DNA of 64,000 nt from Klebsormidium nitens. Its lineage: Eukaryota > Plantae > Klebsormidiophyceae. The DNA is taken from NCBI GenBank assembly GCA_000708835.1, contig DF237238.1, positions 47,570 to 111,569 on the forward strand. The letters run 5' to 3'. Under the pieces are notes generated by a model. It saw only the letters and a list, made by a program, of their open reading frames with translations. It was not told the DNA's origin and ran no database searches. This document shows, in pieces, positions 24,101 to 64,000 of this stretch. Numbering within the stretch: the first letter of the stretch is position 1; each line of letters opens with the position of its first letter. Position numbers and translations under genes: made by a program.

Positions 24101-26597
24101 AGCGAAGCACAGCGAAGGAGCGCGATCGGCTCCGACAGCTGTTCTTCGCTCTGCAAAGCAGGACTTCGTGGGACGTGGCACGTGAGGAGCCCAAGGCTGT
24201 GACGACTTTGCTCGAAACCGAAAGTAGCACGACAAGCAGAACAAGAAGAAGGTCACGCTCAGATCTGTAAGTATATGCGGAATGAAGGCCCTACAAAAGA
24301 CCGGTGCAGGTCCGATGTTTCCGCGTGACAGCCGTATACCAACCCGTTTACTCGCTTCCGTCTTTGATGTAAAATATACGGTGCCCCCAGTGCGGCTCAC
24401 CGGGCACTGCTGGATTTTGGTGACTGCGGAAATGGTGATGCCGTTCGCCACCAGGATGCTGGCCACGGTGTTTTGGCAGTCGCTGACGTACTCGCTGACG
24501 TACGTCCCCGACGCGCCCGCGGCCGCCATTGCCGTGATGGCCAGGCTCACGTACGTCATGCACGGGCTCACGCAAATCTGGTTCCTGCGACCGGCGGCAT
24601 AGAATGTCAATGTTAAACTCAAGCCCCTTTTCCGGTCGCGATTCCTCGAGCCTGTACGACTGATCAGCTTTTTAAGCGGACAACATTCTTTGGCTGACAA
24701 GCACGTAGCACAATCTCAAGAGGAGTCCTTCCGCATCTCCAGTACGTACCCACAGATGGCAACGCCATCTCCTTCCTTTTCCTTTCCCAGAAAGACTGGC
24801 GTGCACAGGATGTTCTCTGTAGGGACGTCAGATTGACGTGCGACTCAAAAGCTTCAAGACGCAGTCCTAGTTCTCGCTTCGCACTCCTCACGTGGTGAAA
24901 GACGCGAGGCCACACGTCACGAGCAGGTTGGCTGCAATGTCCGGCACGGCCAGGTACAGCTCCGCGTAGCTAGTGACGGGACAGGTCCGGTTGGCCGTCA
25001 CCGGCACAATCGCCGGCACGACGGGGCCGTCCCCCACGCTGCCGCCCTGGCCGCCCCCGCCGCCGATCACCGATGGGTCGCACACTGCGTATGGCACGTT
25101 CTGGCACACCTGGAAGGAGAGGGGGCGAAAGGGGCACTTCAAGATGTGGATCCAGACAAGACACGTGGCAAGAATAAGAGGGATGGTGGCAGTTTGGAGT
25201 CCCGGCGAGCGAGCTAGTTGGTATTCCGTTTCTCTCGGCTTTACGCTGTATTGCTAAAAGGAAACATGCCACCTGGCCTGGCTGGGGTCAATGAGTTGCT
25301 TTTGCTGCTGATCCCATCCGCCCTGTTGTTCTTGAAGAGAATGCGACGGATCTTTACGAGCCCTCTTCTGTTATTTTGCTGCTTCAAAGGCGTTGCTCAC
25401 CGAGTATACGTCGATAGCCTGGGAGGACGAAAGGCGCGCTGCCACGTCGTTAAGGCATGCTCCGCAGGCGTTGCTGTCGGAGGTCACAATCTCCAGGTTG
25501 TTTGCATCGTACAGCTGGTTCTGCACGAGCAACACATGACACACGTCAGCAGCTGCAGAGTAGGTGTGGGGCAACTGTTGGCGCAAAGATCGTATGCCGT
25601 TTGCCAATTGTAGCCCCATGAAGTTTCTAATTCAGACTCTTCGTGTCTTTCCATGCAGAATCCCTGATTGACCTGATAGTCCCCTTTGCCGATTGTAAAA
25701 GCGCTTCAGGAGATCAGGACTTGAAGACTTGTTTTCCTTCAAATTCTTTTATCAACTTCCTTAAGATTTTCTTGTTAACTTAACAACTCCCTTAATTAAG
25801 GCAACGAACTTTTGAACATCTTCTCAGCTCTTGGGTCCAGCTGTCAAGAGATCCAGCTGTCCTAGCCTTGAGACACGGAGAGAGGCGTCAGCAGCCAGTA
25901 ATGATAGCGACTGACCTGCAGGAAGGTTAGGACCTTGGGACAGCACCCCTTTTGGGAGTCAGACTTGAAGGGGTAGTAGATGTTGCACGCAGTAACCACG
26001 GCAGACAGATTGGCGCCCAGCACAGCCCCATGGACGGGGCACTCCGACGACAGCTGACCATTGGCAGCCTCCACTGTGACGTCAGGCAGTGAAGACAGCT
26101 GTCAGGGCTGACATCATGTGCCTTGGGGTAATGATGGCCGGTGGGGTGGGTTAAAGGCTTTCTTGTTTGGCCCTCATTTGCTCTGAGGACGTGTGCATGC
26201 AGCTATAACTGGTCAACTGCTGGCTTGTTCTCAGACTTTGAGGTTCTTTTCTGCGTTTCGATCAGTAAACGGAAACATAGGCTTGAACCCGCATAAGCGG
26301 ACTGGTTGCCTAGAAGTTCCTGTCTAGGGATCGCACAGCTGTCTACACAAGCCTGCCCTATAAAGCCATGCTGACACCTCAAGACGTTAGGCTCGTGCGG
26401 TTGCAAAGCTTTCTTGAAGAGTCTGCAGCGGCCACAACGGGGTTGAAGTGGAAGCCAAAGTGGGGAGACGTCAATGCTGCGGTCCTTTCATACGTGGAAA
26501 GGCTGCCCACGCAATGCTGTGATCGTGGCTCACCTGACTGGGAAAGTGCGCAGAGAGCTGTAATTGCAACGAGTGCCACGCTCCAAATGGCATTCAT
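21101..26597 (-). CDS. Secreted Cys-rich four-module protein with Pro-rich stalk and GPI-signal-like tail (apparent +1 frameshift in last exon)
   Basis: Phase-consistent exons approx 26597-26534 (signal peptide MNAIWSVALVAITALCALSQS), 26075-25917, 25524-25399, 25110-24893, 24587-24402, 23962-23759, 22926-22810, 22460-22248, 21775-21691, 21389-21101. The exons show high GC3. Confidence 0.75.
22054..22197. mobile_element. Possible tiny TA-flanked inverted-repeat element in an intron
   Basis: TA|ggtaggat (22054-22061) ... atcctacc|TA (22190-22197). The IR is only 8 bp, and ggta-type motifs are common in this window. Confidence 0.25.
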
Positions 26598-27230
26598 CTT
26601 GCTTGATACGACGTGACGTCTCCTGTCGGTGCCTTTCATCAGCCTGCGCATCATACAGGATTCATCGCTGGCGGCCAATGCTGCCGGTGCCATCCTTGCC
26701 GAACCCAATTACTCTTGTGCAGACCAGGTCCTGCACATCCTAGACTCAATTCTAAGGAAGGGTTTGCCTCAAAGTCAGGCTCTGTGCTCTTGGAAGATGG
26801 TTCTTGCGTATGAAATTTGTATTGCAGCTTCTAAGCCTGAGTGGACGAGTGCCTCTACTACATCGTCGAATGAGGCATGAGGGCTTTTCTCTGGCTTGCC
26901 GTGTGGGGACTCTGGGGCCAGGACATGAATGGCAACTTCGGCAGAGGAATTGCGCTTTTACTTACCTACAATCAATAAGAGTCAAGACGGGCGCCTGAAC
27001 TTCGAAAGGCACATTAATACCACGGGGTGTCATGAGGAATACGGAGTTTATTTGAGCACAGTGCACTGCTGAGTCGACTTGAGGACCGAGATGTGCGATT
27101 ATTGTACGGTCTTCTCGAATTCCATTGCGCGCGCAACTCACTGAATTGAAAATGGACGGTACTTGAGGGCCTTCCTATTCTTGACAACGGTTACGATCGG
27201 ATCGAGGCGGTAGACCCTACGTACACTGAA

Positions 27231-27732
27231 GAGCACGACCTTCAAAATTGACTCGGACGCGGTCCCCGCGGTCGCGCGATAATTCACTCTACAAATTCTG
27301 TGTCGCACCGCAGATGACTAACGACACTTGGCAAAAATCTGCTTAGGTTTGTTGCGAAATCCAGTTGCCCTGTAAGCAATGGCCGATTCCCCGGGTAAGA
27401 AACAAGACCATACAAGGGCTGTTCTTAGCGTCCAAACTGCCCGGTTCAGACCTTAGGCTTACAATTTAACCGGGCCCTTCACGCGCCTATTTTTGCTCCC
27501 GGTGGATCGCAAGCCCAGCCAGAAAACTGGGCAGGCTGGACGCCAGAAACAGTCCTGCAGTGGTTCCAGATTGCTTGCCCGGGGAATCGACCATTCCTTA
27601 CAGGGCTGAAATGCAGACTGGATTTCCGGCAATCTTCCGAGATTCGCCAGTCTGCGGTGCGACCAAAATTTATAGAGTGATTTTACCGCGGGACCGTCCG
27701 AGTCAAATTTGACTCGGCCCAAGGTCGTGCTC
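27231..27732. mobile_element. Foldback MITE with GAGCAC...GTGCTC ends (copy A)
   Basis: Arm 27231-27314 (gagcacgaccttcaaaattgactcggac...aattcactctacaaattctgtgtcgcaccgcaga) is an imperfect reverse complement of 27651-27732 (tctgcggtgcgaccaaaatttatagagtga...gtccgagtcaaattt...aaggtcgtgctc). No TSD found. Confidence 0.7.
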
Positions 27733-27734
27733 CC

Positions 27735-27903
27735 GCAACCCAGTCTCACCGATATTATGAACAAAACCTCATATTGCCATATGCGGTGTCGGTCATAAGT
27801 CATGACGTTTGGTCCATACTCAGTATGAGTCGGCGGTCTTAGCGGTATGTAACGGCCGTCATAGGCATATGATAAAATGTCCATATGCCGCCATTGCCGG
27901 CCG
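27735..27903 (+). repeat. Left terminal inverted repeat (169 bp)
   Basis: gcaacccagtctcaccgatattatgaac...ccatatgccgccattgccggccg is the exact reverse complement of 40528-40696, read base by base. Confidence 0.95.
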
Positions 27904-28214
27904 GACCTCCTCAAGCCTCTTACCTCACCAAAGCAGGCCTGCAGGGGCTCATGCAGGGCCACCTTGCCACAAGTGCACAAGTTCAGCCTCATCCCAGGTC
28001 AATCTGGACGGATCACACTGCAGGGCGCCACAACCTCAATGCTAGCTTCAAGTAAGCATTTGGGCTTTATTTTGGAGCTTTGAGCTCTGCCTCTCCTTCT
28101 GGCATTTACCTCCTTTCTAGCTTGCAGCAAATTGTAAGTCTGGCACAGCGTTGACACTGAGGCAGATCTGATTGCAAATAGAAGGGAGGGAGAAGGGACC
28201 GGCTCTCTTGCCTC

Positions 28215-31200
28215 ATGGATACATCAGAGAGCTCTGAAGAACAGCTCTCAGAACTTTCTAGCCCGGCCGTGTCGTCTTCCTCCTCAGAGCGAGCGCCCCA
28301 GACACACCTCCCCAGCAAACGAAAGCAGGATGAGGTTCCTATTGACTCTGAAGAGGAGAGTGGGGATGTGCAGAGCAGAGAAAGCTTGGGGCGAACGGCA
28401 AGCAGAAGCCTTTCTGGCTCAGGGGCTGCCTCTTCATCTAGGGAGCGCAGCGTCTCTTGTGATGGCCGGGAGCGTATGTTTGCTGACGGCGTGCCAGTGA
28501 CCAGCGCTGCCCCCAGACCAGAGAGGCGAGGAAAGCCCCAAAACAGAAGTGTGCCTCCGGTGCAAGATCCGGGTGCAAGCTCCCAGGGAGTGGATGCTAA
28601 AGAGAGAACCAGCGGGCGCAATGACGGGGGCAGCGGGGTTGATCATCGTCGAGATAACGCAGATGGTAACCCGCGAAGTGCGGGGGATTCGGGGACTGCT
28701 CCGCGGCCTGTCTGGTTTGAGGAAGAGGTGGAGGAGGCTGAGGGGCAGCCTGATTGGGCAGTGCGAACAGAGAGGGAGTACCGGGCTTACGTTGAAGGAC
28801 GTCAGTCTATTGCGGCCGAGTTACTCCGACAAGAGGCGGTCCCTGGAGACGACGAGTCGGGGTGCAGCTGTCAAGGTTGTCAAGGTGTTGGTATCCTGCG
28901 ATGCCAAGAGTGCACAGGAGGCCGCGCGATATGTGCGGAGTGCGACGAAGGGTTCCACCCCCATGCTCATTTTCACCACCGCTCCATCCTCAAAGCGGAG
29001 GGCTTCTGGTCCCCCCTCAGCCCCACGAAAGCCGTCGTCAATGGCCAGCTCAATGATGTAGCCAAGTGCTTCTCACAGCCGCCTTTGCGCCCCTGTGCGC
29101 ACTGCAAGCAAACGTCGTGGGGTCCTGCGCAAGCAGTCGCCGATAAGTGGGCTGTGATTACCCTTGAGGGGCGCTTCGACTTCCACAAAGCTGCCTTTAA
29201 GTGTCAAACAGAGGGCTGCCCCTGCCTGCAGATTCAGGATGGGGTTGAGGCGCTGCAGCTTGGTTACTGGGTGGGGACAGTGACGAAGGTTGTGACGCTG
29301 TACAGCGTTGCAATGCTCAAGCACTGGGACAAAGTGCAAAAGCACATGCCGGGATCAGGACTATCTGCCTTCGTGAAGATTTTGGAGGAGACTGGGCAGG
29401 AGCTTGGAAGGGTAAGTGATGGAAGCAATCGTTTGAGCTAAGCTGAGAGCGTCGCACCGTCCACATTTGTAGGGGCTTTTTGTGTTTTGTGTGCCCTCTT
29501 GAAAATCTTAAATTTGCTCCTCTCTATGTACAGTCTGCTTGCTTCAAAATTAGCAGAGCCTGGCTCACCGGGCCCTTGTTTGTGCTTCAGTGGTAACAAC
29601 ATAATACCCTCCTGATTCATTTTCTTGCGGTCGTCTTGCCCTCGTCTGTGGATACATCTATCAAACTTCTTGTGGAGATTGGTAAACCGTATTCTGTTCT
29701 GACCATCCATACATCCTAGGGTCATTCATTCTGATAGAGAACTATTCTGAGGGAAGATGTTTACTGATGTTCATTCACGTAGGCACTTGCATATTGAACC
29801 CAATGTCGAATTACTTTGTTCAACAATATTTATTGTGTCTCCCTTTGCTTCGACTTCCAATCAAATTACATCCAGGTTATCATGACTCGGGTTATCTAGC
29901 GTTCTACCCCCATAGAAAGTATCCTCCCTTGTCCCTTCACTAAGTGAACAGATGCTGACGCAATCTTCTCAATTCTGAGCAGGAAGGACCGATCAACCGC
30001 CACACTCTCGGGCTCGCCTGCAGCGAGTTCAAGTTTGCGAAGTACGAGTTCGCCTCCCTGGGTCGGATGCAGACCGGGCTTGAGTGTCCAGCGTGCTACC
30101 TTGATCTCCACTCTATAATCAGTGATGGGAACCGGAAACTCTACCGGTGGGACCGCTCGTATGCCCTGTTCCAAGACTGCTACTACGGGGAGCTGTTGAT
30201 CTTCGAGGATGAGAGTGTGCTGCGCACTCTAGAGGCGCTCGACCTACAGCTCGGGGTATCGCGGCCGGATGCGCAGTGTGGTGGAAAGTGGAAAGCGGCG
30301 CGGGACACACGGAGTGCTATCCGGGGTCAGGCGGAGACGGGAGCGGTGTTTTGCGGCTGCCGCCACCAGGTGGCCATGAAGGCAGTCAATCTTGTGCGCA
30401 GCGGGGAGCGCTTCGGGTACACCTACTTCCTGGACCGCCACTTTATCCAGGGGCGACACCCGCGCTTCTTCTGGCAAGACATCATATGCAAGTACTGGCC
30501 GTGGCGTGAGAAGGCGCTGGACAATATGGGGGAAGACGTGGACGGCGTCACAAAACCCGCGCTCAACATCATGCACGGGAAGCTCCACTCCTGGCCGTGT
30601 CAGGTGAGGCGACAACCAGACTGGATTCTCAGAAGGACAAGGTTTGCGAGGCAGCTCAAGCTTGACGAAATCGGTGCGCAACTCGCACAGTGTTTGTCGC
30701 ATCATTCGGTTCCAAGCGGAAAGCAAATTGTTTTTTGCTCTGCCTGGTAGGGTGGACTCAAATCGGTTGTGATTTTCTTTTGTAACGCTTGAGCGTGAAT
30801 GGGCCTAAGCTGCTCTGTCGTGTCAATAAAAGCTTCTTTCTAATGAATTGCCACACTAGTCTTTCTTGAGCGTACCTGCTTTTTTGCGAGCTCACATTAT
30901 TGTGAGCCAGTTAGACTGGCCAACGGATAGGCTGGATGTGACGTGTTAGATTATCAACAAAAGAGCAGCGCGATCGTTTTGTGGGGACGTTTTCTATTGG
31001 GGTTGAAGGGCTCAAGTTGCAAATCACAGATCTCCAACTCGGAAACAGGTGTGTCCGACCTGGTTCTTACTGGAAACAGAGGAGTTGTCCTCAGTTGTCA
31101 GCAATCCGACCTGATGCTTTACTGGCCATCTAAGCTGACTCTTTGCATGTCACGTCCGATCTTACCTCGCTGTGCTATCATTACTTCAAGCACACAAACA

Positions 31201-33640
31201 ATATGCGGGCGAAAGGAACAATCGGTTTATCTAGTGCCTCTCCTGTAGTCACTGATTGTTCCTTCTCTTTTGGCAGGCCGTGTTCGGAGGCCGGTGGCAA
31301 AAGGGGGCCGGAGCAGGTTCTGGGGAGGACATGGAGTTGTTCTTCTCTTACATGTCGCGGTTCGGGTTGGTGACGAAGAATATGGGAGCAGCCCGTAAGT
31401 AATCACAAACTGTTTGACGGGTTTTAAGGTGGTCAAAGATGTCTGATCTGAGTCTACAGCCATCCTAGTAGAATTCCGGGCGCCAAGGAGCTTTTACGGC
31501 GTCAGTCGACTGGAGTACGAGCCCGTTCCTTACTTCCACGCACCCTTCATCGGGAGCGTACGAATATTGGCCTGGAAGAACTGAACGGCTATCTAGATTA
31601 CAACAACATTTCCGGCATCGTTTGTCTGCACCAAGTCTAATACTGAATCCGAAAAGTCTTGAATCAAGTCGACTGCCACGATCTGCTCGTTGCTGGCTCA
31701 TTCAGTCCCCGTCGTGGTGTCGTGCTGGGTTGTGATACTGTATTGGATTAGCGCTTGCCGTTTCCTAAGGGTGTCTTATCTTGACGTACAGGACGAGGAG
31801 AACGCATCACCGAAGCCACCCTCTACTGGAATGAGGACAAGCGGGCCGCCATGGCGAAGTCGTTGGCTAAACGGTGAGTTGGAGATGCGTACACTTTGAA
31901 GTGGCGCACTCTGAAAACAAGTAACCTCTCGACTGATCTTCTTTCAAGTATTCCATTCAACAAAGGTGCAAAGCTGTGCAGACATACAAGTGCGATCAAA
32001 TTCACGTGCGGACTTCGCTTTCTAAACACTCCACGAAATTCATAAGGTCCCTCAATGGTTTGAGGGCGGCTTCGATGATATGCGCAGCTCGATTACGTCA
32101 TTCTTATTGAATTGCATTGTTACATTTTAGCACGTTTCGAATTCTAAGAGTCCAGTTGTACGTGCGCTGGCTGTCGATCACGCGCTTGCTCCTACGTCAA
32201 CTTGTCGCTCGTCAGAAAAGAGGGAAGTACATCACGTGTGATGCATTTGGTTGCGTTGCATTTACTTGTCCGAGCGCCTTAGAAATGTTAGGAAGGAATA
32301 GTTTCTAGTCATGATCCGGGTCGGGTCAAAGGAGCGGCCGGAATCTGTAACGAACGTGCAAAGCCGAGAGCACCAGGAACAAAGTTGTTTTCAACCAGAT
32401 TTCGGTCGTTTGATGAAGAGACGTTCAGTCTCCTTTTACCTCAGTGCTTCCACACGATCTGTTGTGTAACATCCGTTCCTTTCTTCCACAAAGGTTGGAC
32501 CAGACGAAGTTCCGCGTCGTCGCAGCTGCCCAGGACTTGGATCGACTCTGTCAAGAGACGCTGCAGATTTCCGAATCCGAGGTACCCCTCCAGAAGTTCG
32601 AAGAATGGAAGTCTGAGGTGCAGCAGATCGCCAAAGAGCAGTTGAGCCGTTCGGGCCGGGCTCCAAGTGCGGCTGTAAAGTACTTCAGTCTGGTCACGGA
32701 GGTCGAAGCCGCTCGAGAGCTGGAAGCATTCCGCCAGTCGGGGTCGTTCGAGGACAGTTTACTGTGCTCAGAAACGGTCCAGCAGGTCCGTTCGCTTACT
32801 GCGGAGGTAGTGAGGGACCTGCATCTCAAAGAGAGGAAGCTAAAGGAACTAGAGCGGAGTCTTTTTTCGGGGGAAGTGGGTCCGAGTATTCCAGAGGGAG
32901 CGAAGCAGAAAGTGTTGGAAGCAAGCCGGACGGAACTGGCCGAGCTGACCATCCTCGGTTTGCAAGTCGAGGTTGAGGCTCTTCTGCACAGTCTGGAGAA
33001 GTACAAGTCAAGGATAGCAAGCGAGGCAGACTCCGCAAAGATGCGCGCGTCGATGCGCAAGAAAGAGGGTGAGGTAAAGAAGCACATAGAGGCGGCGATC
33101 GATAGGTACAACGTTGTCGTTCAATAGGGTGACCCGAACAAACGGAGGGATTCAGCGAGCGCGTCCGCCTTGTTGGGCGGTGCAGAGCTGCCCTGGCAAT
33201 ATGAGGGTCGATCAGACGAGTTGCTTACCGTAGGTGCCTTGACAGTACGAACAGTAGCCTTCAAGCGGAAGGTTGAACTGGTCGAAGCATTCAATCTCTT
33301 GCAACGTTTGCAGGAAGAGTCGAGACTGTTAGTTGATGAGCAGCGGAGTCTTCTGACGTATTACTCGGATCTGATTGTGGGTCTAGATAAGAGAATAGAA
33401 CAACTCGACTCCCTCGACAGTAGGGCAGACGCCGAAGCTCCTGCCGAATCGGAGTTGGAAGGCCGACAATCCAGGTATTGGATCTCCGAAAGTCGACTCA
33501 AGAATGATAGGGATGCCCGGAACGGTTGCAGAGCGTTGCACGCACAAGCGAGGGCGGCAGCTGCGATTCGACTTCGAGAAGCTAAGAAGAGCTTTCCTCA
33601 CGCGCTCGAGGAGGCCAGTGCTGAAGGAAGTGGTGCGTAA
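28215..33640 (+). CDS. CxC3-KDZ transposase (5 exons; in-frame TAG at 33125-33127 in the C-terminal helical region)
   Basis: Phase-consistent exons 28215-29411, 29983-30603, 31277-31376, 31792-31873, 32494-33640. Features: Cys/His cluster CSCQGC..CQEC..CAECDEGFHPHAHFHHR; CxC3-like VITLEGRFDF..FKC..C..GYW..T..TLYS..MPG..AFVKIL; CPAC..SDGNRKLYRW (D); CGCRHQ; GERFGY; WQDIICKYWPW (D); MHGKLHSWPCQ; GAGAGSGEDMELFFSYMSR (E). Confidence 0.88.
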
Positions 33641-34808
33641 GAAAGAGTCAGGGAAGCGGCTGCCGGACTCCATCTTGAGGAGGAATTTGCGGAGGCAAAT
33701 AAGGATCTCGAGGGGCTAGAGCTGGCACGCCTCCAGGCTTTGTCTTGTCACCTGGAGGCCGTAGACTGTTCATTGCTGGTTCATAGAGCGTTCAGGTTAG
33801 GCCTAACCGTTCATCAGCTTCCAGAGCTTACGGAAGATCTACTAAGAAGTGTAAAGTATTTTTCGGAGGAGGAGATCTCGAAATTTTTGAGTGCTTTAAG
33901 GAGCACTGGTGCAACCTGATGTAGGCCGGACAGATCCAAATGTGCACATAGGACGGACAAGGTACTAATCCATTGTTAACAACCATCACACTAGGAAACT
34001 CGGGTGATATCAATCATGATCTCTTTTTGGTGACTCATTGTATGTCTTGGCAGCTCTCAGGGTTGTCCGACCAATTGTTGAACTTATTCTTGAATACTGA
34101 TGGCTCGCCGGGCATGAGGATTGGATGCAGTTATGCGCCGCGCATATGCTATATATAGTTAAAATTGTGCATCATATGCCACTGGCTATGGCATCATAAA
34201 TTTCTTTGGTTATAATAGCTTGTGTTGGCATGCAATTCTCGGCTAGTGACTGACAAGCACGCATGCAAATTCTTGCATGAAATCAAATACAACAATATTG
34301 ATCACCGATTCTTAATATTGATACGACTGCCGCGCACCGCGTGTGGCACTATCTTGGTGATTGCTCAATGAGAACGATCGGATAGTCGACAACGTATTAA
34401 TATTTGCGTGATATGCTCCGTGGATCATCGGATTGATAACATAATAAGTTGATTGCCAAAGATCCATGCGCGCGGTTATTAGAATAGCACTAACTTAACC
34501 AATTATGACTTAAGCTAGCTTTGTGCAGAATGATCGGATTCATAATGAGACCGCACTGTTGGTCTACTTCGATTTTGAGACACAGCCTATATATATTTGC
34601 GAATAATCGAATTGATGCTTTGTATATGCAGATTCCAGATTGGCATGCATCATTATGGCAAGGCAAGCGCGGACAAATGTACAATTGCAACTTTATGGGT
34701 ACTGAACCCGGTCAATTTGTAGTGTTTGGAAGGTAAAAGCCTGCTCGCGTGTGCGACTTCAAACACCATGCAACTAACATTGTACTTAAGTACGGATACT
34801 ATGGTCCT

Positions 34809-35560
34809 TCACAAGTCCTTTACACTATTCTTGAATCGGAGACATGGGCCAAGCTTGTCCTTTCCAAACAGATTCTGCAGTGCATCCATGTCCAAAGCTT
34901 TGGCCGTCTCCTCATCGATGTAGTGCTTCCTAAGAGCTGTCAACATTGTCTCAATTACATCTTCGGGATACCGATCCGCCAAACCTTTCACCAGACCTTC
35001 AAGATTCGGCGATAATTTAAACGTGGTCGCCGGCTTGGCATTGGTTGCTTCGGGGGGCGTGTGCTCTTTGGCCCTATCCACATTCGATTTCGAGTCGGCC
35101 ACCCCTTCAACCTTCACGTCAATCTGAGCCTCCGTTTTCATGGCCTTTCTGAAGTACTTCTTGTGCTCGTTCGTAAACGCCTCCCCCTTTGCGCCGGCGG
35201 AGGCGTAGAACCAACGAGTTGCCTGGTTTCCTTCCGTGGGGGTATGGACCATGAGGGAGACCGAACAGCCTAAAACTCGTAGCTTGTCAACCTCCCTTGT
35301 TGCGGCCTTCAACACAACAGGAAGGGCCGGAATTTTTGCCTTCTTCGACTCGTTCTCTGCTTTCTTTCGAGCAGCATTGTGGCTGTGAATGTCGTAGTTA
35401 CAGCCTTGACAATGCGTCCTCCGGATGTGATTCTTGGTTTCGGTAGGGCAGCCGCCAGGGCGGGGGCAGGGGTTGACGGGAGCCTTCTTTTCAGGCTGCC
35501 CGCTCTTGCTTTCGGGAAACGCCTCCTCGTGTGCTCGCTTGCCTCGGGCTCCTGACGAAT
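34809..35560 (-). CDS. Transposon cargo protein: Cys4 zinc-ribbon-like motif plus C-terminal SAM-like domain (5' exon(s) not resolved)
   Basis: Acceptor tttgcag at 35561. The open frame runs to the stop at 34809 and includes CPRPGGC-x12-CQGC (35468-35400) and DVIETMLTALRKHYIDEETAKALDMDALQNLFGKDKLGPCLRFKNSV, similar to the SAM pattern IDGxxLxxLxxxDLxxLG.KLGPRxK. Confidence 0.65.
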
Positions 35561-37399
35561 CTGCAAAGGAAAGGAGTGAGGAAGGTGCTTATGACCAGGG
35601 ACCAAAAATAGAGTAAGCGTCATGACGGTCTGCCGATGTTCCTCAATTTCACCCAAGTTCTTTCGCGTAATCTTTCAAGGAGATTGATCAATGTCGAGTC
35701 TTAAATATACGAGACGCGCTGAGCGGACTTGCTTTAGCTCTCATATGATAGATGCAAAGAGTTATCTCCGTTCCAAGAGCTCATCACACTGAACCTCCTG
35801 TTGTAGTTTGTTTCACGCGCACAGAGGGACTCACGAAGCACGTAAGTTCTGACCCTTGAGATTTGAGATACATGCGGGCTAGACGGTTCGATGTTGAGTG
35901 ATGTCTGACCTCTGTTCAGTCGATAACACCCTATGTCAAGTGCTGGCTATGCACAACAGTAACACGCGAACGTCAATGAAAACGAAGACAAGCGCAGGGA
36001 CGTGGAACGCAAACACGGAATAGTATTACGAGTCACAGACAAGACTACCAGGGCAGACCTTGGTCCCAATTGAAAGACGAACCCAGTTTTGACCATGCAT
36101 TTGTGTACGTATCAAAGTGGTCATTTGGTAAAAGCACTGAACGGCTCTATTGCGCTCCGAACCAAGATTTGCAGAGCCATCTCCGAGCGATAGCAACCGC
36201 AGATCGAAGGTGAGGGTGGGAGAGGATGCGTTGCTGAGAGCAACGCCGACGAGGGGTTTAAAAATTGAGCCCACTTACCATGTTTGCTGGGTGTGGCTTG
36301 AGAGCGCGTGTTTCGGCTCGGGCTGTTCACGAAGTCATCGGAGGCAGCTTTACGGTTGCTGCCTGGGGCTTTTCTAACAGAGCGTGGAGTCGAATGCAGT
36401 GCCGGATGCTCCGCGCGTGTTGCCTTACCGATAGGAGGCCCTTCTTCTGCTGCACAAAAGTAGGGACGCGATTATGGCCACGAAATGAAATCATTTCATG
36501 GAAGACGACATGTCAATTAATAACAATCAGGAGTCAAGTCCTTCCGTTTGTGAAAGATTTGCGTGCGAGGATGCTTCTTAAAGTTAGACATTTAGTGTCT
36601 TCCTTGCGGGACATGCCGTGGGCATTTACGGGCCACAGGATAGTTGGAGGCATCGCACAGCAGGTGCATCGTCACACGATACCTAGCAACAGACAATCAC
36701 TTAGCCCATAATTGCTGCCAAAAAGCTGGCCGACTTTGATCTTGGCGACCAACCTGAGCCCGTTTGCTTTTCGGTGCTCTTTCAATCTCAAATACGAGAA
36801 CCGTTGACTCAAGGCGTATGGGACGCAGCTTGTTGACGGCGCTCAACACTGGAATACATGATGCATCTTAAGCAGAACGACCGACAACTTTACAGAGTGA
36901 CATATTCAAAACCAAGCTCGCCGTCTGATGTGCAGCATCAGCAAGCGCATTGCTAAAGAAAGCGCCTTTTTTGGAAACCACTCAAACGAAAAGCTGGCGA
37001 ACGAAGGGGAGTCCAAAGAGGAAAGCAGAGTCAAAGCAGAGTCAGCCACCACGAGCATGGGTTCAACTCTGGAAAAGCAACCGTGGCAAACGACATGTCA
37101 TACACCAGCCGAGGTTGGGGGTCAGCAGAAAGGGTAGCCTTCTTTACGTCATAAGCTTGAGCACGAAGCCATATTCTAATGTTCGACATTCAACGTGCTG
37201 AACGGACATATCCTCGGCAGCAGGATAGAACCAGTTCAAAGAGTCGCGGTCATGTTTTGCCTAGTGCTGATGACTCACTTAGCTAGTAGGTCTTACATGA
37301 GATCAACAAGGCAACTTGACAAGCCTTCTGCTCGAAGAAGCTAACAACACGCGTAGACAAATCAAATCAGGAAAAGAGGTCATTACAATGCAAGCCTAC

Positions 37400-40335
37400 C
37401 TGCTTCAGGACACATGCCAACATTGTCTGCCGGGCTTTTGACCCAAAGTAGATGAAGGTAAATACAGAGAATCAAAGAAACGGCCAAACACGTTTCGAAA
37501 AGAGAAATCGCTACAACTTTCAAAGTCCACGCCAACCTGACTCACCAGTCTCGATCGGCGAAGCCTGAGTCTCTGATCGGGCTCTATGGACGGGGGTTTC
37601 GGGGAGGTCAGCTGCATGGTCTGGCACATGGCGCCCGGCGGGGGTCCCAATTGGCGACTGCGCAGGCGGTTGGGTACCTGAAAAACAAAGAGCTGCCTCC
37701 GATCAAGACTGTCCTGAGGCTTATTTGAATTCAAGCAGGGCCCATGATTTTCGAAGAGAGAAGTGGACGTAAGGAAGAAAATGGAATATCAATCAAAGCC
37801 AGGCCCTGCTCAAGAGAACCAGATTGAACTAGGCTCGAGATTTGCGAAGGTTGGAAAGCATACAAAAGCACTGCCCGGCGCTTAGTCTTAGGCAAAGGAA
37901 GAATCAGTCCCGAGCACTCATGTAGGCTCTTTGATGTCCAAGCAGTTTCGGTCGGTCCTTGCATCACCAGATTTTGGAGATTCTGCATGCGCTAGGCAGT
38001 CGCAAGTCCCACCTCCAGAGCTGCTGGTCCCTCTCCTATTGCTGTGCGGCGACCGCCTCGTGGATGCACCCTCCGAAGCCACGAACTCAGATCTCGTACG
38101 ACCTGGCAGTAAAGGGTTCTAGAGAATTGGTACAAGAGGGAATGCACTTGAACTCTGACGTGCCTGAGGAATAGTGAGGTATGATATTCCACTTGCCGTC
38201 ACTGAGCACGCGCTGTGCTGACCAGCAATGAGCAATATCTGACGAAAGGAAAAAAACCCTTGAACGGAACAGGTGCACAATATCAGAGGAAAGGCAGATT
38301 CTATGCCGAGAGCTTTGGATTTTGGAGAAACGCTGCACTACGCTGTGCATCCACAATAAACTTCGCAACCGAAGGCAAAGCAATTGTCGAGGCAAGTACA
38401 TAGGCTTCTCTTTTTCCATATGGATAATGCATTTAAGGAGCTCTGGAATATGCCCCACTATGAAAGAGAAAGTTGCTCTGGATAGGATGCGGTGCCTCTC
38501 CAAAGCTTGAGCTTCAGTGGGCTCGAAACAATTGAATCACTAACAAAGACACGTAGACAATACAATCCTGATTGGCCGTCATGCAGGAACGGTGCACCCT
38601 TGGCAGACTTCCTCTGAAAGACCCCACCTTCTCAATGCAATATCTCTTCCTCTAGCTGGACCAGTTCATCAACACCTGCCACAAATAGCATATGCTGCAT
38701 AATGGCGAGCTTACTCCTCAATTGAGCCAACTACTTTCTGGTGTTCCAAAGACCTGATCTTAGGATAGCAAATTGAGCCAATATAACTACGCCCCACCTT
38801 TCGCGCCCTTGTCCTGTCCTGCGGCATTCGAGGGGTTCGAGTCACCTTCTTTGGATCCCTCAGTATCCACTGCACGTCCAAACCAGGTTGTTGAGTCAGA
38901 AGGCCTTTCAATGTTGATTCGAAGAAGAAGCTACTTGGGTGCACAACCCCAATCTTAACCCCAGAATTTGGCATCCTGGCCCAAACGAGAGGAGTTGAGC
39001 ACTCTTGCTTTGCGTGGAGGGAGTATGGATGCGCCAACAGGACCAGCATCAGCGAGTTCAATAACATCCAAGGAATACAAGACGTCCAGCCTCCTTGACC
39101 AGAATCGATCACACAACGTGGTGAATCCGTACACTTTCACCATTCACTACAGCCGGACCACTAGTCAAACAGGACCTGAATGCACATTCAAAAGTTCATT
39201 CAATGCAGACTTGTAAACAGCTGAACGCGCAAGATGCATATGACTTCGTTCGAAACCTCACCATCAACATTAGTCTTGGCTTTTGGGATCCTGGCGTGTT
39301 CTCCAGAACCCCATGCTTGTGCGAAAGGAGCCGGTCTCTCAGTTGACACCGAACGCTGGGCATGACCACTTGGGTGGAGATCGGGAGGATGATTGCTCTT
39401 TGTGGCATCGGGTGATCGATGTTCTGCAAATTGAGCGGGGACAGTCATCGTACCTCAACATAAAGCATCACGTACCAAATCCGCCAGATTCATCACCACT
39501 CGGTCAGCAATCCAAGAGGCAGGGGAATACGAGAGTGGTTGCAGACTGGGGCAAGCGAGTGGGCATTTGTCTGCTCAAATATACCGTAAAGCAGCACTCC
39601 TTTTGAAGATGACAATAAGGGTTTGCAGACTCAAAGCCAAGGCTTCTCTGATCTGGTCTTCCTCTGCAGAACAAGCGAAGAGCAAGTTCTACATTCTGTT
39701 GAATTTCTCAAGGCTCCGACTTCCACGAGGACAGTCAAAAGCAAGAGAGCAGACTGAAGATATGCTGCAAAGGCGCAGCGAGCGGAACAATGTGGAACTA
39801 TTCAGGAAACAATTGTTGCAAGAGAGCATGCCTTTTATGCAAGATTCACAGACTTGGAACCTGAACAAGGGAAGGAAAGCAGATGATTGTACACAGGTTG
39901 GGGCTGCTGTGGCAGACACGCACCTGATCTGGGCACTTCCCGCCGTTCTCGCTTCTGCAACTGCTCATTTAAGAAGGATTCAAAGTGTGCATTGTCAAGG
40001 TGGGCGAGCTTTTTCAAGACAGCTCCATGCTTTGCAGATCTGAAAAGTCTGTCCGACAACTCCGACCATGGGTCAAAGTTGTTAAGCGTGATCAGCTCAG
40101 CCCATGACGCAATCTCCTTCTCCTCAGCATACTGTAGAAGAGCTGTTCCAAACTCTGGGATAGACAGATTCTGCCCTTTTGTGGGTACGTTTCTGCGGAG
40201 AAGGTTTGGGTACTTATTGCTTTTGATCTTGAGCCCTTTCCAATGCTGCTTCAGAGCTGTCTCTGTATGCTGAGTTCCTCCAGGATCCATTCTGAAAGGC
40301 CTGCATGAGATGCTCTGGGCAGCAGACGTGCTCAA
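37400..40335 (-). pseudogene. Degenerate second cargo gene with a UIM-like motif
   Basis: Exon ~40335-39925 (donor tcag|gtgcgt) splices in phase to ttctgcag|ag at 39662, giving EVPRS-EEDQIREALALSLQ. Downstream frames are broken by stops, so the extent is uncertain. Confidence 0.4.
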
Positions 40336-40527
40336 GAGTCAAGAACTTGAAGGACAATGTCAGGCCTCCTGTCCCCTAGCTGCTTGCTACCCCGTAAGCC
40401 CTAAAACGCGACCGAGTGCCAGATTGAAGAGCCTTGCAGTGAAGTTTCAAGTTCCAAGGCCCAGCCTGCGGAAAGGCTGAGGCAGGGCCAATGGCAAGGG
40501 TGCCAGCTGACAGTAACAGCGGGAGGG

Positions 40528-40696
40528 CGGCCGGCAATGGCGGCATATGGACATTTTATCATATGCCTATGACGGCCGTTACATACCGCTAAGACCGCCG
40601 ACTCATACTGAGTATGGACCAAACGTCATGACTTATGACCGACACCGCATATGGCAATATGAGGTTTTGTTCATAATATCGGTGAGACTGGGTTGC
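40528..40696 (-). repeat. Right terminal inverted repeat (169 bp)
   Basis: Reverse complement of 27735-27903. Confidence 0.95.
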
Positions 40697-40699
40697 CAA

Positions 40700-41300
40700 T
40701 GTACTGCAATCCACACGGTCGCGGCGCGCAATTCTTTGTGGGTCAAAACGGTCGCTTCGGGTCGTCCTGCACGGTCGATATTAAGCCCTGCACTGCCGAT
40801 CGGACGGCGCAGATACCTCGCTGTGGATATGTTGCTGAGCCCGGGGCCCGCCGGGCGGCAGCACACCGGGATGCACATATTCGCGCCGGCGGCAGCCAAA
40901 TTCCTTCATAGACTCTATTGAATTTCTCATACCAATATGGAACTTTTGTCATTGACTTATGGCTTCAATACCATTTCCGAGATTTGGGTAATAGGTATGA
41001 GAGATTCCTCATAAAATCTGTGAGGCCATGGGTTGCGATCATGGTCGTCGGAAACAGACGCGGACGCGTGTCCTGCCCGGCGCGGCCGGGACTTTGAGCG
41101 CGGCACATGCAGATCGGGCGAATGGCTGGCGGACAATTGGCAAGCGGCCAGGGCCAGCCGCCAGGCTCCTTGCACGGAGCGTCAGACATACCGTACAATT
41201 GTCTTCAGCGTCCGACACGGAGTTTTGATTTCGCTGGCTCCTAGGCCGACTAGTGCTCCGGTCAGTCGCCTGGAGGCTTGAACCGATCGGCTTCTCCCAC
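40700..41300. mobile_element. Degenerate foldback element right of the KDZ transposon
   Basis: Central arms tctcataccaat (40925-40936) / ataggtatgaga (40991-41002). Outer GC-rich arms gcccggggcccgccgggcggcagcacac versus the reverse complement of tgtcctgcccggcgcggccgggac. Ends not defined. Confidence 0.4.
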
Positions 41301-41753
41301 CCAAATACCCCAGAAAGACCCCGGTTCTGTCGACTTTTTGGCCGATGCCCCTCGGTTCAGGCGGCCGAGAGGCAAATCCGTCGGCTGACTGTGACCGTTG
41401 ACGGCTCGTCTCGAACACTGATTGTCGTCTCTCCACTGTGAATCAGAATCGTGATTGGCAGAGCCTGAGCCTGAGGTTCTCTCTTCGTTCTGTTTGCGCT
41501 CGACTCGGCCAGGCTAGCCCGGCTAGGCCCTAAATTGCCTAATAAAACGGGAATACGGTATAGGTATTATGTACCGTACCCCTGCCATGGCCCTGGGCTG
41601 CCGCGCCTCAGTATACGGTAGGTATCCTGACTGACTGAATCCTTGGACCTTCAATGGGCTCTGGCCTACAGTTTGGCACAGTACCTACCTTTAAACCTAC
41701 AATTGGCGTTCTTGGCGTACCGTACGTTTAGGGGTGGACCATCGTGTATCTTC

Positions 41754-42203
41754 GAGCACCATTACATTATAGGCCGGTTCGGTTGGAAATGCTGACGTTG
41801 TCCAACGGAACCGGTCTTTACATGGCAAAGTTGCGGGCCCTCGCGGTTCGCGGCCCGATCGGCGGTCATTGCCCCCCAAAAGTTCGAACAATCTCCCAAA
41901 ATCGAGGAACCGCGAACAGCGTTGACCAAAGGACCTCGAGGCTCGGGTAGGTCCTTTGGTCAACGCTGTTTTGGTTCCTCGATTCCCGGAGCTTGTTGTG
42001 GTCTGATGTGGTCCGGCAGTGCAGACCGGAACACTTGCATGGCAAGACTCAGACGACGTCACTGTTCTCCGGTAAAACTTCTTTTCGCAAGAGGGGGGTC
42101 GGCACTGCTCCGGACCGAGCCAGCCCAGGCTTTGGAAGGCCCAACCGGCGCCGTTGGCTTGATGACGTTTTTCCAACCGAACCGGTCCAATGTAATGGTG
42201 CTC
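41754..42203. mobile_element. Foldback MITE with GAGCAC...GTGCTC ends (copy B)
   Basis: ~54-bp imperfect TIR gagcaccattacattataggccggttcggttggaaa / tttccaaccgaaccggtccaatgtaatggtgctc. Perfect central 22-bp stem aacagcgttgaccaaaggacct (41915-41936) / aggtcctttggtcaacgctgtt (41949-41970). Confidence 0.8.
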
Positions 42204-42582: not shown

Positions 42583-45500
42583 ATGGCTTCCATGCAGCTA
42601 CTTCAATTTGTGCTGTCTGCCGCGCTGCTTTTCTCCTCATCATGTGCACAGCAGCTGAACCCACCTGCCATTTTTTTGGCAAATGCCACAGTCCTTCCTG
42701 CTGCAGACAGCACTAATGCTTCTCTTCCGTCAAATGCTATTTTGACCATTTACAGAGCAGTGCGGTCTCAGAATCTAGGGCTTCTGGGTGCACTATTAAA
42801 TGTTAATATAAGTGGGTTGGCAAACTATCTGGCACTTGATGTTCAGTTGGTGCTTCGCAATACAACAGCCCCGATCACGTGAGTCTTCTACCGAATCGGC
42901 CCAGGGTCTTTTTTGTGCACATCCACTTGTTGAACTTGTTTAGGTGCAAATGAGAGCAAAGTTCAATCCAGCGGCACTTCTTGTCTCAGGAGCCACTGTA
43001 GAGTACACATGTATTGCCATATTGTTTGGTTTGCAAGTTGCATGTCACTTCATAGTGCCAGTTTCTTGCCAGATTGGCCAAGGACCAGCTTTGCTTTTTC
43101 TGGTGGCAGGTTGTCCAATGTCACCACTCTCCTTTCTTTCTTTGCCCTCCTTACACCGCCAGCGGGCTCCAATGTAACTGTGAACAATGTCTCGGAGCTC
43201 TACTTCTACTTCATTGACAGCACAAACGTACTGACTGTCTCGCAAGTAACAGCTGGACAGGTGAGATTCACCACACCTGCTGAAGGTTGCGGGAATGGTG
43301 GGTGGCCAAAGTTGAGGTCTTCAAGCTAGAAATAGCGGCCCGAGCTGAATAAAGCCTGTACCTTCTTGAAGTCCTGGCAAGTTGCCAGAGTGGGGAAAGA
43401 TTACTAGCTCACATTTCGAGACGCAAAGAAGTGTTCTGCGGGTTTGTGGGGAATCAACAGAGGAACAAAAGGTTGGCAACTGAAGGAAAAGGGGATCAAT
43501 GGCTCTGTATGTTTCCTTTGCGTATTTGCATTCAGAGCCATTATTGCTTCAGACGTACCTAGACGACGAGCCTGTACACCCCTGCACACCTCTACGAGGT
43601 CGACATTGGACAGGGCTCATGGCCCAAGATTTTTGTTAGAGGAGGTCAGAGGGGAGGTTTCGGATTGTACAATAATCTCTGATCTTTTTGTTGAGACTTG
43701 CAGGTTTGTACAATCTCATTTAGCTCTTTGTGGAAAGGGTGTGCAGGTCCTACTCCGAGAAGTGCGCAAAGTCGTTGGTTCCTTTAGATCTGCCAAATGC
43801 AGGGTTCTAAGACAACTCATTCTCATGTCCAATACCAGGTTCTGTTTCAAGCTTCACGGGCAACACGCCTCAGATTCTCAAATTCAGATTTAAATGCAGA
43901 TACTGGGGAAAGGCATGTTGAGAGCAGCCAAGGTTATTGTGTGGACTGGGATAATTCTGTGTTCAGTGGGTCTGGTCAGAGTCGCTCCCTTTTAAACCAA
44001 GTTTGTCCGTCACTTGCCAGATTGACGACAAGGTCTTAGAAAGGTGCCTTTCTGACCATACTCTCTGTTATGCAGCTTGGCAACGTCTTCCTCACCAGCT
44101 TCTGGCAACTGCTCAACAGCACCACCTCTCCCAACGGTACCTGGACTGTCGCCTATGTCAGCATCACTCCCGCTCCGAGCGGTCCCTTCATCCCTCAAAC
44201 CACCCCAGTCTTCGCGGCCACCCCTAATGTCACCATTTGGAGCACCATCGGTAGTGGCATGGCCACTTTCGTGAATACCAGCATCCCTGCAAATGTCACT
44301 ATTGAAGCGAATGTCATTGTTGCCTCAATTGGTCTCCAAGCAGCCCTCAGCGATGGCAATCTGAGCCCTGCAAATGTGGCCAACCAGTACTTCGCCCCCT
44401 TCTTCCGAGTGGTGCTGCCAACCCTCCCAAGCCCTACATTGTGAGGAAGAACTGTTGCATCACCCCATCTGCAACTCAAAAAGTTCTGCTTGATTTGTGA
44501 AGTTCCAGAAATGTTGTGGTTATAAGAAGCAACACTCTGAGGCAAGCGAGAGTTCTCAGCACGCTGAAATATTGCATCTTGTGATGGTCATGCTGCTTTT
44601 CCAGGTCTTGACAGAAGTCTTGGTTTTAAAAACTTTTGCAAAGGCAATGATGAAGAGGGGGCTTTTTCTCCGTCTCTGTCAATTAGATGGTGAAAGAGAA
44701 GCCATGATTTCGGTGTTCTGGTCTCAAAGTTCAATGGTTTTTGCATACTGCTGTGTCGCAAAGGCGGTTTTGATGACTTGTCCAGTGCACATCGACTTGT
44801 GTTTTCTGTGGCAGGCTCAATCTGACAGACCCCATCATAATTACTTTCTTCGACTTGCTGCGCGGCCGCAACGCAACCGGCAATGCTTCTCCGCAGACCG
44901 TCGTCTCGTACAAGCAGTTGAACATCCAGTCGGCTATCTTGACAACCCTGGTGCCTGCTCTCCCTTCGGTAAGGGCGCAGACTGCAGGCAAACGTTGGAC
45001 AAACAATCAGAGTTCAAGACGCGACTGCAGACTTTCCTTGTTAGTTCTTTCCTTTATGTGTTTGTATGTCTACAATAATGCTTTCATGACTTGCTCTGAA
45101 GGGGCCCTGGAGGTGCCCATTGTCTGCCACACGTCTGCTCTCAAGGTGGCCTCTATTGAAGTTGGTCCTGATGTCGTTCCTCCGCATACACTTTCTACAG
45201 AGAGACAATAACCCGGCTCGCTTGATAAGCAGTGTACGACGGCAAACATTTGAGATCCAGAGTTACTTTCATCTTACAGGACTGCAATCCAGAGTGCGGC
45301 AATATAAAGTGTGTCTTTCTGCTCCTTTTCACAATCACGGTGACGCTGTGCACAATATCAGAGGAAGGATTGGTGGAGCTAATTCCAAAGGCCCGTTTTG
45401 CGAAGTAGAGGCCACTGACATGTGCGTCATGTCCTGCGCAGATTGGTGACGTATATGTCATACAGCTATGGCAGGTGCTCAATGCCTTTTCCAACAATAC

Positions 45501-63940: not shown

Positions 63941-64000
63941 AGTGTGACGTCTGCCCTAAAGCCTCAGCTATAAAGCGGCAATACGACCAGAGAACGAAGC

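Follow-up and report, generated by a model that had tools for sequence, protein, structure and literature searches.

The window, by which we mean the whole 64-kb stretch of DNA analysed, contains two inverted repeats at positions 27735–27903 and 40528–40696, each 169 nt long and 100% complementary to the other, whereas the next-longest inverted pairs in the window are only 25–38 nt. The repeats bracket a spliced transposase gene on the forward strand and a partner gene on the reverse strand. We placed the exact termini by comparison with a sister element (L015), whose transposase core is 51% identical to that of the window and which has the ends CAACCC..GGGTTG, a 99-nt terminal inverted repeat (TIR), and an exact 7-bp target-site duplication (TSD). 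The termini CAACCC..GGGTTG are common to the window element and L015, and the TIR of a further relative (L024), which is 88% identical to the window TIR, starts alike. Because the sister element starts with CAACCC and is surrounded by its 7-bp duplication, the G/C pair at the outer edge of the 169-bp arms probably belongs to the flank. The true ends of the ~13-kb element are thus probably at 27736 and 40695, with 5'-CA..TG-3' termini and TIRs of 168 bp. The left TIR (27736–27903, forward strand) begins with CAACCCAG, and the right TIR (40528–40695, reverse strand), which has the same sequence, ends with CTGGGTTG. The identity of the repeats and their bracketing of the element therefore agree with the preliminary description, and their length is probably one base pair less than the 169 bp given there. 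CATA/TATG motifs are abundant in the TIR (13 observed vs 3.9 expected), and the TIRs contain no CArG box. An Rfam search of positions 26000–42000 gave no match. When metagenome contigs were queried with 18 bases from the TIR terminus, the 12 matches were due to chance, and none of them extended beyond the seed. The preliminary description had considered that the repeat might occur as independent MITE ends not linked to this transposase. In the source run (X1), the TIR was joined to two inner continuations only, at ~1.6 times the interior depth, which does not support a MITE family separate from the transposase. The element looks single-copy.

With terminus offsets of −3 to +11 allowed, the window copy showed no TSD of 3–12 bp, and none was found displaced nearby. 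The left flank (27242–27735) is a palindromic MITE-like repeat, the right arm of which is cut at the transposon end, and the right flank (40696–40800) is unrelated, resembles the end of another repeat by eye, and has no TSD in common with the left flank. As the two flanks stem from different repeats, we propose that the TSD was lost when one of the ends underwent a deletion or rearrangement. If the left flank had instead been wrongly joined to the TIR during assembly, the true site could still carry a 7-bp duplication. Such an artefact would fit the TIR contig in X1, which continues into the right flank only, the fact that no contig listed for X1 is identical to positions 27713–27734 plus the TIR, and the N gaps in the window, which mark it as a draft scaffold. 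However, contigs missing from a run prove nothing about a mis-joined flank, a multicopy palindrome such as the left flank is readily pruned from assembly graphs, and the left junction lies inside a MITE arm, at a position fitting a real truncation. We therefore consider a misassembly unlikely, and prefer the loss of the TSD by deletion or rearrangement.

The transposase gene comprises five forward-strand exons. Exon 1 (28215–29411, 399 aa) encodes a low-complexity N-terminus and a Cys/His zinc cluster matching Pfam CxC3 (E 6e-18). Exon 2 (29983–30603, 207 aa) encodes the KDZ core (PF18758, E 4e-15, above the curated cut-off) with the catalytic residues D30124 and D30478, both invariant in 41/41 aligned homologues. 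Exon 3 (31277–31394), which matches the end of the KDZ model (E 0.01), carries the GEDME (GExxE) motif, whose second E is the catalytic E31334 and which is kept in all algal relatives. Exon 4 lies at 31792–31873, and exon 5 (32494–33919) encodes a helical C-terminus with an ancestral stop codon, TGA, at 33917–33919. All four introns are GT-AG, and RNA-like runs contain every junction in spliced form (three of them in X5 and all four in X6). The Pfam matches were scored exon by exon, and the joined exons were used for the frame check and the stop counts. The five-exon structure, the membership of the KDZ group with a CxC3-type cluster, for which both Pfam matches are strong, the intact D-D-E residues, and the streptophyte-algal host, all proposed in the preliminary description, were borne out. 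These sequence features identify the element as a DNA transposon with TIRs that belongs to the KDZ group (CxC3 type), and its host is most likely Klebsormidium nitens.

The transposase had also been regarded as intact, which does not hold for exon 5. A premature TAG at 33125–33127 (forward strand), where two close relatives (L001 and L002) have Lys (AAA), ends the protein at 883 aa, and a second in-frame stop, TAA, follows at 33638–33640. The TAG is retained in the spliced contigs of X5 and X6, and the TAA is also present in RNA-like contigs; in L001 and L002, the reading frames are open past the TAG position to the C-terminus. Three explanations that would spare the protein were rejected. A non-standard code (TAR = Gln) is incompatible with the Lys of the relatives and with the normal use of CAA/CAG in the coding exons; a small intron excising the TAG is contradicted by the spliced contigs, which cross it without gaps; and programmed readthrough was discarded as the relatives carry Lys at the TAG position, so that this is not a conserved readthrough site. 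The untranslated remnant of the C-terminus (33641–33916, forward strand) is SAM-like by pattern and position alone, and Pfam, BLASTP, and hhalign searches for a SAM domain in the transposase tail of this family were all negative. At the position of the remnant, a canonical SAM domain occurs in one relative (L016) and a PHD domain in L015.

As the nonsense codon takes the last quarter of the transposase, the window copy is most likely non-autonomous. The element would still be autonomous if the 883-aa protein, with its CxC3 cluster and whole D-D-E core, were functional, or if the TAG were read through, and this would account for the perfectly identical TIRs and the continued spliced transcription. 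Autonomy is also favored by the variation of the far C-terminal domain between families (SAM or PHD) and by the distribution of changes unique to the window copy, which are in excess only beyond the second stop (19 vs 9 and 7). On the other hand, the TAG deletes the RLxEExxLL helix, which is conserved across the CxC3-KDZ group as far as fish, echinoderms, and cnidarians, and the Lys of the relatives speaks against readthrough. The apparent single-copy state also argues against autonomy, as does CWG protection in two bisulfite-like contigs, which suggests CWG methylation, a silencing mark, on the element. Continued autonomy is thus very improbable, and we retain the reading of a non-autonomous copy. 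It is awkward that the TIRs are identical while the transposase carries two nonsense codons, unless the TAA arose before the TAG. The youth of the family, as first proposed, is weakly supported: although the two TIRs do not differ, the element seems to exist as one copy, has two stops in its transposase, has lost its TSD, and may be methylated at CWG sites.

The partner gene lies tail-to-tail with the transposase gene and consists of four in-frame reverse-strand exons (38102–34809). The last exon (34809–35560) encodes a Cys4 knuckle, a predicted MADS/SRF/NRF1-like alpha-beta-beta-alpha fold, a linker, and a predicted SAM fold. The other three are an exon of low complexity at 36279–36449, which is conserved in four relatives (L002, L020, L021, and L022), a low-complexity exon at 37546–37677, in frame, and, at 38013–38102, the furthest upstream exon that joins in frame; the latter two have similar exons in L022, as judged by eye. 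Further upstream on the same strand, the region 38628–39663 contains uncertain, inferred exon-like pieces (a UIM-like stretch at 39663 and pieces at 39423–39262, 39143–38798, and 38675–38628), which hold TAA, TAG, or TGA codons in the frame required for joining the partner. A 122-codon open reading frame (ORF) at 39924–40290, also on the reverse strand, has a good donor at its end; no homologue of it was found, and its Myb/SANT-like lead (0.85) is under the reliable level. An RNA-like contig of X6 spans the right TIR to ~630 nt inward. One uninterrupted partner gene spanning 40290–34809 was rejected, because no stop-free splice path was found. The upstream ORF is doubtful as a second gene; it may be a small gene of its own or the 5' exon left over from a longer partner gene that is now broken. 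Of the two opposite-strand genes originally described, one is therefore solid, whereas the upstream ORF and the exon-like pieces that follow it cannot be joined without stops, and no homologue was found for them.

A tail-to-tail partner is also present in L001, L002, L016, and L015, and its position and orientation are constant in all algal relatives whose sequence extends far enough for the comparison. The partner is homologous in three lineages; a profile built from the close family recovered the L016 partner over nearly its full length (E 4e-4), although the transposase core of L016 is only ~60% identical to that of the window. In the partner exon, dN is 0.22–0.28 vs dS of 1.5–3, a ratio from which the gene is judged to be under purifying selection. 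Sequence similarity between the L015 and window partners was not significant by hhalign (E 0.16) or profile search, and searches bounded by length and cluster size found no partner homologues outside Klebsormidium-type sequences.

The C-terminus of the partner is predicted to form a five-helix SAM fold (pLDDT 81–86; Z 7.9 and rmsd 1.8 over 60 residues to the tankyrase SAM), and SAM domains fill the top of its structural match list. The Z of 7.9 is just below the caution level of 8, and the window copy has no Pfam match for this domain; the L015 partner matches Pfam SAM_1 (E 3e-10). For the middle domain (pLDDT 77), SRF, NRF1, SEP3, MEF2A, and MEF2D were among the top 12 structural matches, with Z of 6.4–3.8, values below the level of 8 that separates a MADS-like match from common folds. 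Nearly all top Foldseek rows were also MADS or NRF1, with E of at least 0.2, and the atlas TM was at most 0.44. No Pfam family backs this fold: in seven partner members, neither SRF-TF nor Nrf1_DNA-bind, nor any other Pfam model, gave a match at E up to 10, and a PDB profile search of the partner returned ribosomal eL37 alone, for the knuckle. The structure predictions thus lend modest support to a MADS/SRF/NRF1-like fold. The partner is thus not TET/JBP, HMG, or Ulp1, which the preliminary description named as frequent KDZ cargo, but a predicted combination of a Cys knuckle with MADS/SRF/NRF1-like and SAM folds; among the opposite-strand ORFs, TET/JBP had neither a Pfam nor a fold match.

The partner might nevertheless be ordinary captured cargo, with unrelated genes for SAM-bearing or zinc-knuckle proteins picked up by different families. 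The MADS-like shape would then be a common alpha-beta-beta-alpha layout that plays no part at the TIRs. The modest fold scores and the lack of detectable homology with the L015 partner are compatible with this, and giant KDZ elements elsewhere hold varied accessory genes (PMC12477816). Random capture is, however, difficult to reconcile with the same position and orientation in every testable algal relative, with homology detectable as far as L016, with strong purifying selection, or with the first rank of MADS/NRF1 in two independent structure searches. We judge captured cargo to be unlikely, and favor a standing role for the partner.

We consider it fairly probable that the locus holds a two-gene, Kyakuja-like (CxC3) KDZ cut-and-paste transposon that was inactivated recently and probably exists as a single copy. 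In functional members of the family, a spliced CxC3-KDZ DDE transposase would bind the long TIRs, cut at the 5'-CA..TG-3' ends, and insert with a 7-bp duplication; this step is established for Kyakuja, and sister element L015 shows it here. The convergent second gene would be a standing component of the family rather than random cargo; its predicted folds suggest a dimeric DNA-binding, SAM-polymerising helper acting on the CATA/TATG-rich TIRs, which may help transpososome assembly or regulate the chromatin of the element. In the window copy, the nonsense codon would most likely have abolished autonomy, and the TSD would have been lost through a deletion or rearrangement affecting one of the ends. 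A stronger version, which we put forward tentatively and hold to be somewhat improbable, is that the Klebsormidium CxC3/Kyakuja KDZ elements are obligate two-component systems, in which a MADS/SRF/NRF1-fold and SAM partner binds the TIRs and partners the transposase, making them a mobile reservoir of this transcription-factor fold in the sister lineage of land plants.

The element is probably Kyakuja-like, given its 5'-CA..TG-3' ends and the 7-bp TSD of sister L015; the transposase tree comprised CxC3-type matches only and held no reference Kyakuja, Dileera, or Zisupton proteins. Dileera features are absent, in that the cluster is CxC3 and not CxC1 and the TSD of L015 is 7 bp and not 8, and so are Zisupton features, as no exon matches SWIM or CxC4. 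The 168-bp TIR is unlike the TIR-less fungal TET+ Kyakuja families; however, Chlamydomonas Kyakuja are described as TIR elements, and TIR absence is therefore not Kyakuja-wide.

As an element, this copy adds little, since large TIR-bounded KDZ elements with extra genes are known and the copy is probably dead. It is a delimited streptophyte-algal example that connects long TIRs and ends of the Kyakuja type (CA..TG, with the 7-bp TSD of L015) with the CxC3 clade, and its new part is the predicted fold of the partner gene. The extra ORFs of KDZ elements mostly have "no known domain". If the partner were a MADS/NRF1-fold TIR-binding protein, it would be the first KDZ accessory gene with a mechanism open to testing, and would tie one of the major transcription-factor folds to a family of transposons.

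No publication dealing with Klebsormidium KDZ elements turned up in our literature search. The fungal Kyakuja of Agaricomycotina (Kojima 2025, PMC12730594) share the KDZ DDE core and 5'-CA..TG-3' termini with the window element, and their 7-bp TSD is matched by L015 but not by the window copy; they have no TIRs and carry TET/JBP, whereas the window element has 168-bp TIRs, CxC3, and a knuckle/MADS-like/SAM partner. The Cryptococcus elements KDZ1–KDZ3 (Dileera) are 9–11 kb long with TIRs of 139–241 bp (169 bp in KDZ3) and, like the window element, combine one CxC-KDZ transposase with extra ORFs (PMC11343200; 10.1101/2025.05.19.654958). They differ in their CxC1 cluster, their 8-bp TSD (4–8 bp for KDZ2/3), their proven mobility, and their extra ORFs, which have no recognised domains. 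The description of KDZ transposases as mainly fungal and animal understated their range, since Chlamydomonas has curated, active Kyakuja and Zisupton elements (PMC8226300; 10.1101/2022.06.16.496473) and giant KDZ elements with varied accessory genes are present in Ectocarpus (PMC12477816). Long-TIR KDZ elements of 10–30 kb with extra genes are already known from Cryptococcus, Chlamydomonas, and Ectocarpus. The Chlamydomonas Kyakuja (Tcr1, Kyakuja-3_cRei; 10.1101/2023.03.24.534157) and the Ectocarpus elements are algal, large, and of the TIR type, as in the window, and the latter often combine transcribed accessory genes with a pseudogenised transposase (PMC12477816). Their hosts are chlorophyte and brown-algal, unlike that of the window, and the available portions of these reports mention no MADS-like partner; their proteins were absent among the 20 best labelled matches.

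The nearest labelled non-algal relatives are animal CxC3-KDZ proteins (Nematostella, Dendronephthya, Clytia, Strongylocentrotus, Patiria, Priapulus, crustaceans, and teleosts), which are 30–39% identical in the core and have the CxC3+KDZ architecture and the C-terminal helix in common with the window transposase. At the Clytia locus, the one animal locus examined, no TIR was seen around the gene, nor any gene matching the partner. A functional analogue of the window pair is the PIF/Harbinger transposase with its Myb/SANT protein, although that transposase belongs to an unrelated superfamily. In PIF/Harbinger, the second, Myb/SANT protein is a dedicated DNA-binding helper, whereas the putative helper in the window is predicted to be MADS-like/SAM. 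A tail-to-tail arrangement of the transposase and the second gene, as in the window, is described for Ectocarpus Harbinger (PMC12477816).

A five-exon gene encoding a CxC3-KDZ transposase lay between the two arms of the terminal inverted repeat (TIR), on the plus strand at 28215–33919. When the spliced model was searched against Pfam one exon at a time, exon 1 matched CxC3 (E = 6e-18), exon 2 matched KDZ (E = 4e-15), and exon 3 corresponded to the end of the KDZ model, in agreement with the family assignment in the preliminary description. The D, D, and E residues named there also held up: both aspartates were invariant across 41 aligned homologues, and the catalytic glutamate, the second E of a conserved GEDME motif, was retained by every algal relative. 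All four predicted introns were precisely missing from the contigs of two RNA-like runs, which confirmed the proposed splice junctions. The closest named relatives were the K. nitens scaffolds L001 (DF237773) and L015 (DF237488), followed by metagenome or Logan contigs and then by animal CxC3-KDZ proteins at 30–39% identity; in the phylogenetic tree, the window core clustered with algal-type sequences (support 98/93). Adjoining the L001 element is a gene (L001:1119–6609) with Peptidase_C78 and HNH/I-HmuI-like matches, which overlaps a perfect 26-bp inverted repeat (1072/2445).

The transposase had been described as intact, and this proved incorrect. Exon 5 contained two in-frame stops, TAG at 33125 and TAA at 33638, both before the TGA at 33917, whereas two related sequences (L001 and L002) carried AAA (Lys) in place of the TAG and had a frame open to the end. 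The TAG was kept in the spliced contigs, and the predicted product was 883 amino acids long, compared with approximately 1,147 without the stop. The missing segment includes an RLxEExxLL helix that homologues from fish, echinoderms, cnidarians, and crustaceans possess, so the truncated transposase is probably inactive. Between the two stops, the window copy had 23 private changes versus 18 and 16 in the others, with no clear excess, whereas past the second stop it had 19 versus 9 and 7 (relative-rate chi-square approximately 3.6 and 5.5). As the excess appeared only after the second stop, the tail domain may have been lost first, through the TAA, and the gene knocked out only recently by the TAG, an order of events that would fit the still-identical TIRs.

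The two identical 169-bp inverted repeats reported earlier (27735–27903 and 40528–40696) were found to be 100% complementary and by far the longest such pair when the whole window was compared. Another full-length element was present in L015 (L015:9235–24237, 15 kb), with 99-nt TIRs at 88%; it starts with CAACCCA, stops with TGGGTTG, and is flanked on either side by the 7-bp target-site duplication (TSD) CGCACCC. Based on these termini and this duplication, together with the TIR of another relative (L024), which was 88% identical to that of the window and had an identical start, the window element most likely spans 27736–40695, with 5'-CA..TG-3' ends and a 168-bp TIR. The L001 TIR was 81% identical to it across the 75 available bases. 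Kyakuja elements have 7-bp TSDs and CA..TG ends, whereas the TSDs of Dileera and Zisupton are 8 bp (Kojima, PMC12730594). At the window copy, no TSD was found (flanks GCTCCCG versus CCAATGT). On the left, the element adjoins a palindromic MITE-like repeat of approximately 470 bp (27242–27735), which has paralogues at other genomic sites and arms that are 64% alike; its right arm ends before sequence that continues in a paralogous copy. The right flank is unrelated to the left. The simplest reading is that one end underwent deletion or rearrangement, with loss of the TSD; the left junction was absent among the contigs of the source DNA run, and it may instead reflect a mis-join.

Inserted in the right arm of the MITE-like repeat is a short hairpin-like copy, and the arm itself is truncated where the KDZ element starts. 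The sequence at 40696–40800 has repeated GACCG-like motifs and finishes, on the minus strand, in a terminus of the CAGGGCTT type; it resembles one end of a hAT-like repeat. A G lay immediately outside the CA terminus in four of the five ends seen, hinting at a C..G target preference; one relative (L024:1–196) sits within a 6-bp microsatellite. Elsewhere, the window is a draft scaffold, given its run of N at 12772–13536, and it contains a tandem array (63407–63942; 4–5 copies of an approximately 121-bp unit). On the plus strand at 44000–48000, an ORF rich in Pro and Thr precedes a kinase-like exon, and the two probably belong to a receptor-like kinase; the pieces of it that were scanned gave no Pfam match at E 0.01.

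In the source run, the interior of the element was recovered as one 9.8-kb contig with zero differences. Its word depth, which is not equal to copy number, was 18.4, versus 17.6–18.8 for unrelated KDZ-bearing contigs, and the TIR contig had a depth of 30 and only two inner continuations. This fits a single copy and the absence of a MITE swarm. In a bisulfite-like run (C>T/G>A pattern), 19 of 19 CWG cytosines were unconverted, versus 18 of 37 in CHH context (p = 5e-5), in two contigs picked for their high identity (28377–28505 and 30955–31145); all the CAG/CTG cytosines were unconverted, whereas CCG and half of the CHH were converted. This is only a hint of CWG-specific methylation over the element. 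In K. nitens, methylation in CHG and CHH contexts is a mark of silent transposons (PMC5890265).

One of the two opposite-strand genes described previously was recovered as four exons (38102–38013, 37677–37546, 36449–36279, and 35560–34809) that join in frame over 380 codons. The other was reduced to a 122-codon minus-strand ORF (40290–39924) with a weak Myb/SANT lead; this and an exon-like minus-strand stretch resembling a ubiquitin-interacting motif (39585–39663) are separated from the four-exon partner by pieces carrying stops. The ORF could be a small additional gene, or else the degenerate 5' half of a single long partner, for which the L015 partner, annotated at 944 amino acids, provides a model. 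The last two partner exons were clearly conserved among relatives, and the first two resembled exons of the related sequence L022. The last exon had a dN of 0.22–0.28 versus a dS of 1.5–3 and four database homologues, from K. nitens or assembly proteins; both of those whose contigs suffice to tell were tail-to-tail with a CxC3-KDZ gene. A convergent gene occupied the equivalent position in both the metagenomic relative L016 and L015. The former was homologous to the partner (E = 4e-4, with a profile built without it), and the latter shared its layout alone: Cys knuckle, alpha-beta-beta-alpha, and SAM. At L016:6315–10494, the transposase ends in a canonical SAM domain (Pfam SAM_1) and its partner in a SAM-like one, giving a twin-SAM layout. 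In the L015 element, a PHD finger follows the C-terminus of the transposase, and the SAM-ending partner includes an 84-bp tandem repeat.

The C-terminal 70 residues of the window partner were well modelled and matched SAM domains (Z = 7.9). When modelled by itself (pLDDT 77), the middle domain had SRF (Z = 6.4), NRF1 (5.5), SEP3 (4.6), and MEF2 (4.1 and 3.8) within its top 12 structural matches. The best Foldseek rows were nearly all NRF1 or MADS, none of them significant, and a structure atlas also listed NRF1 and SRF-TF clusters (TM approximately 0.4). Sequence methods gave no support for a MADS link; from the models, we lean towards a MADS-like middle domain.

The analysis establishes that the element is bounded by TIRs and has Kyakuja-type ends, that its DDE transposase gene is transcribed and spliced but carries a nonsense codon, and that the convergent partner is conserved; it also shows a 7-bp TSD in a sister element and none at this copy. 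KDZ elements move by cut-and-paste, as in Cryptococcus KDZ1–3 (PMC11343200). CATA/TATG motifs were frequent in the TIRs of the window (13 versus 3.9 expected) and of L015 (7 versus 3.3), and could be candidate binding sites. The partner might bind them as a MADS-type dimer and oligomerise via its SAM domain, perhaps with that of the transposase tail (canonical in L016, putative in the window family). The window copy would be movable only in trans, for example by the L001 family.

An incomplete, word-based search found no publications on KDZ in Klebsormidium or on a MADS-like KDZ partner. The window element is a KDZ transposon that behaves like Kyakuja; strict membership would follow from its ends and the sister TSD rather than from a tree with references. 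The element is real but probably dead, and belongs to a lineage variant of this known superfamily in which the partner gene is conserved. Cryptococcus KDZ1–3 are comparable in size and likewise have long TIRs and additional, unexplained genes, and accessory genes and broken transposases are described for giant KDZ elements in Ectocarpus and Chlamydomonas (PMC8226300, 10.1101/2022.06.16.496473, 10.1101/2023.03.24.534157, PMC12477816).
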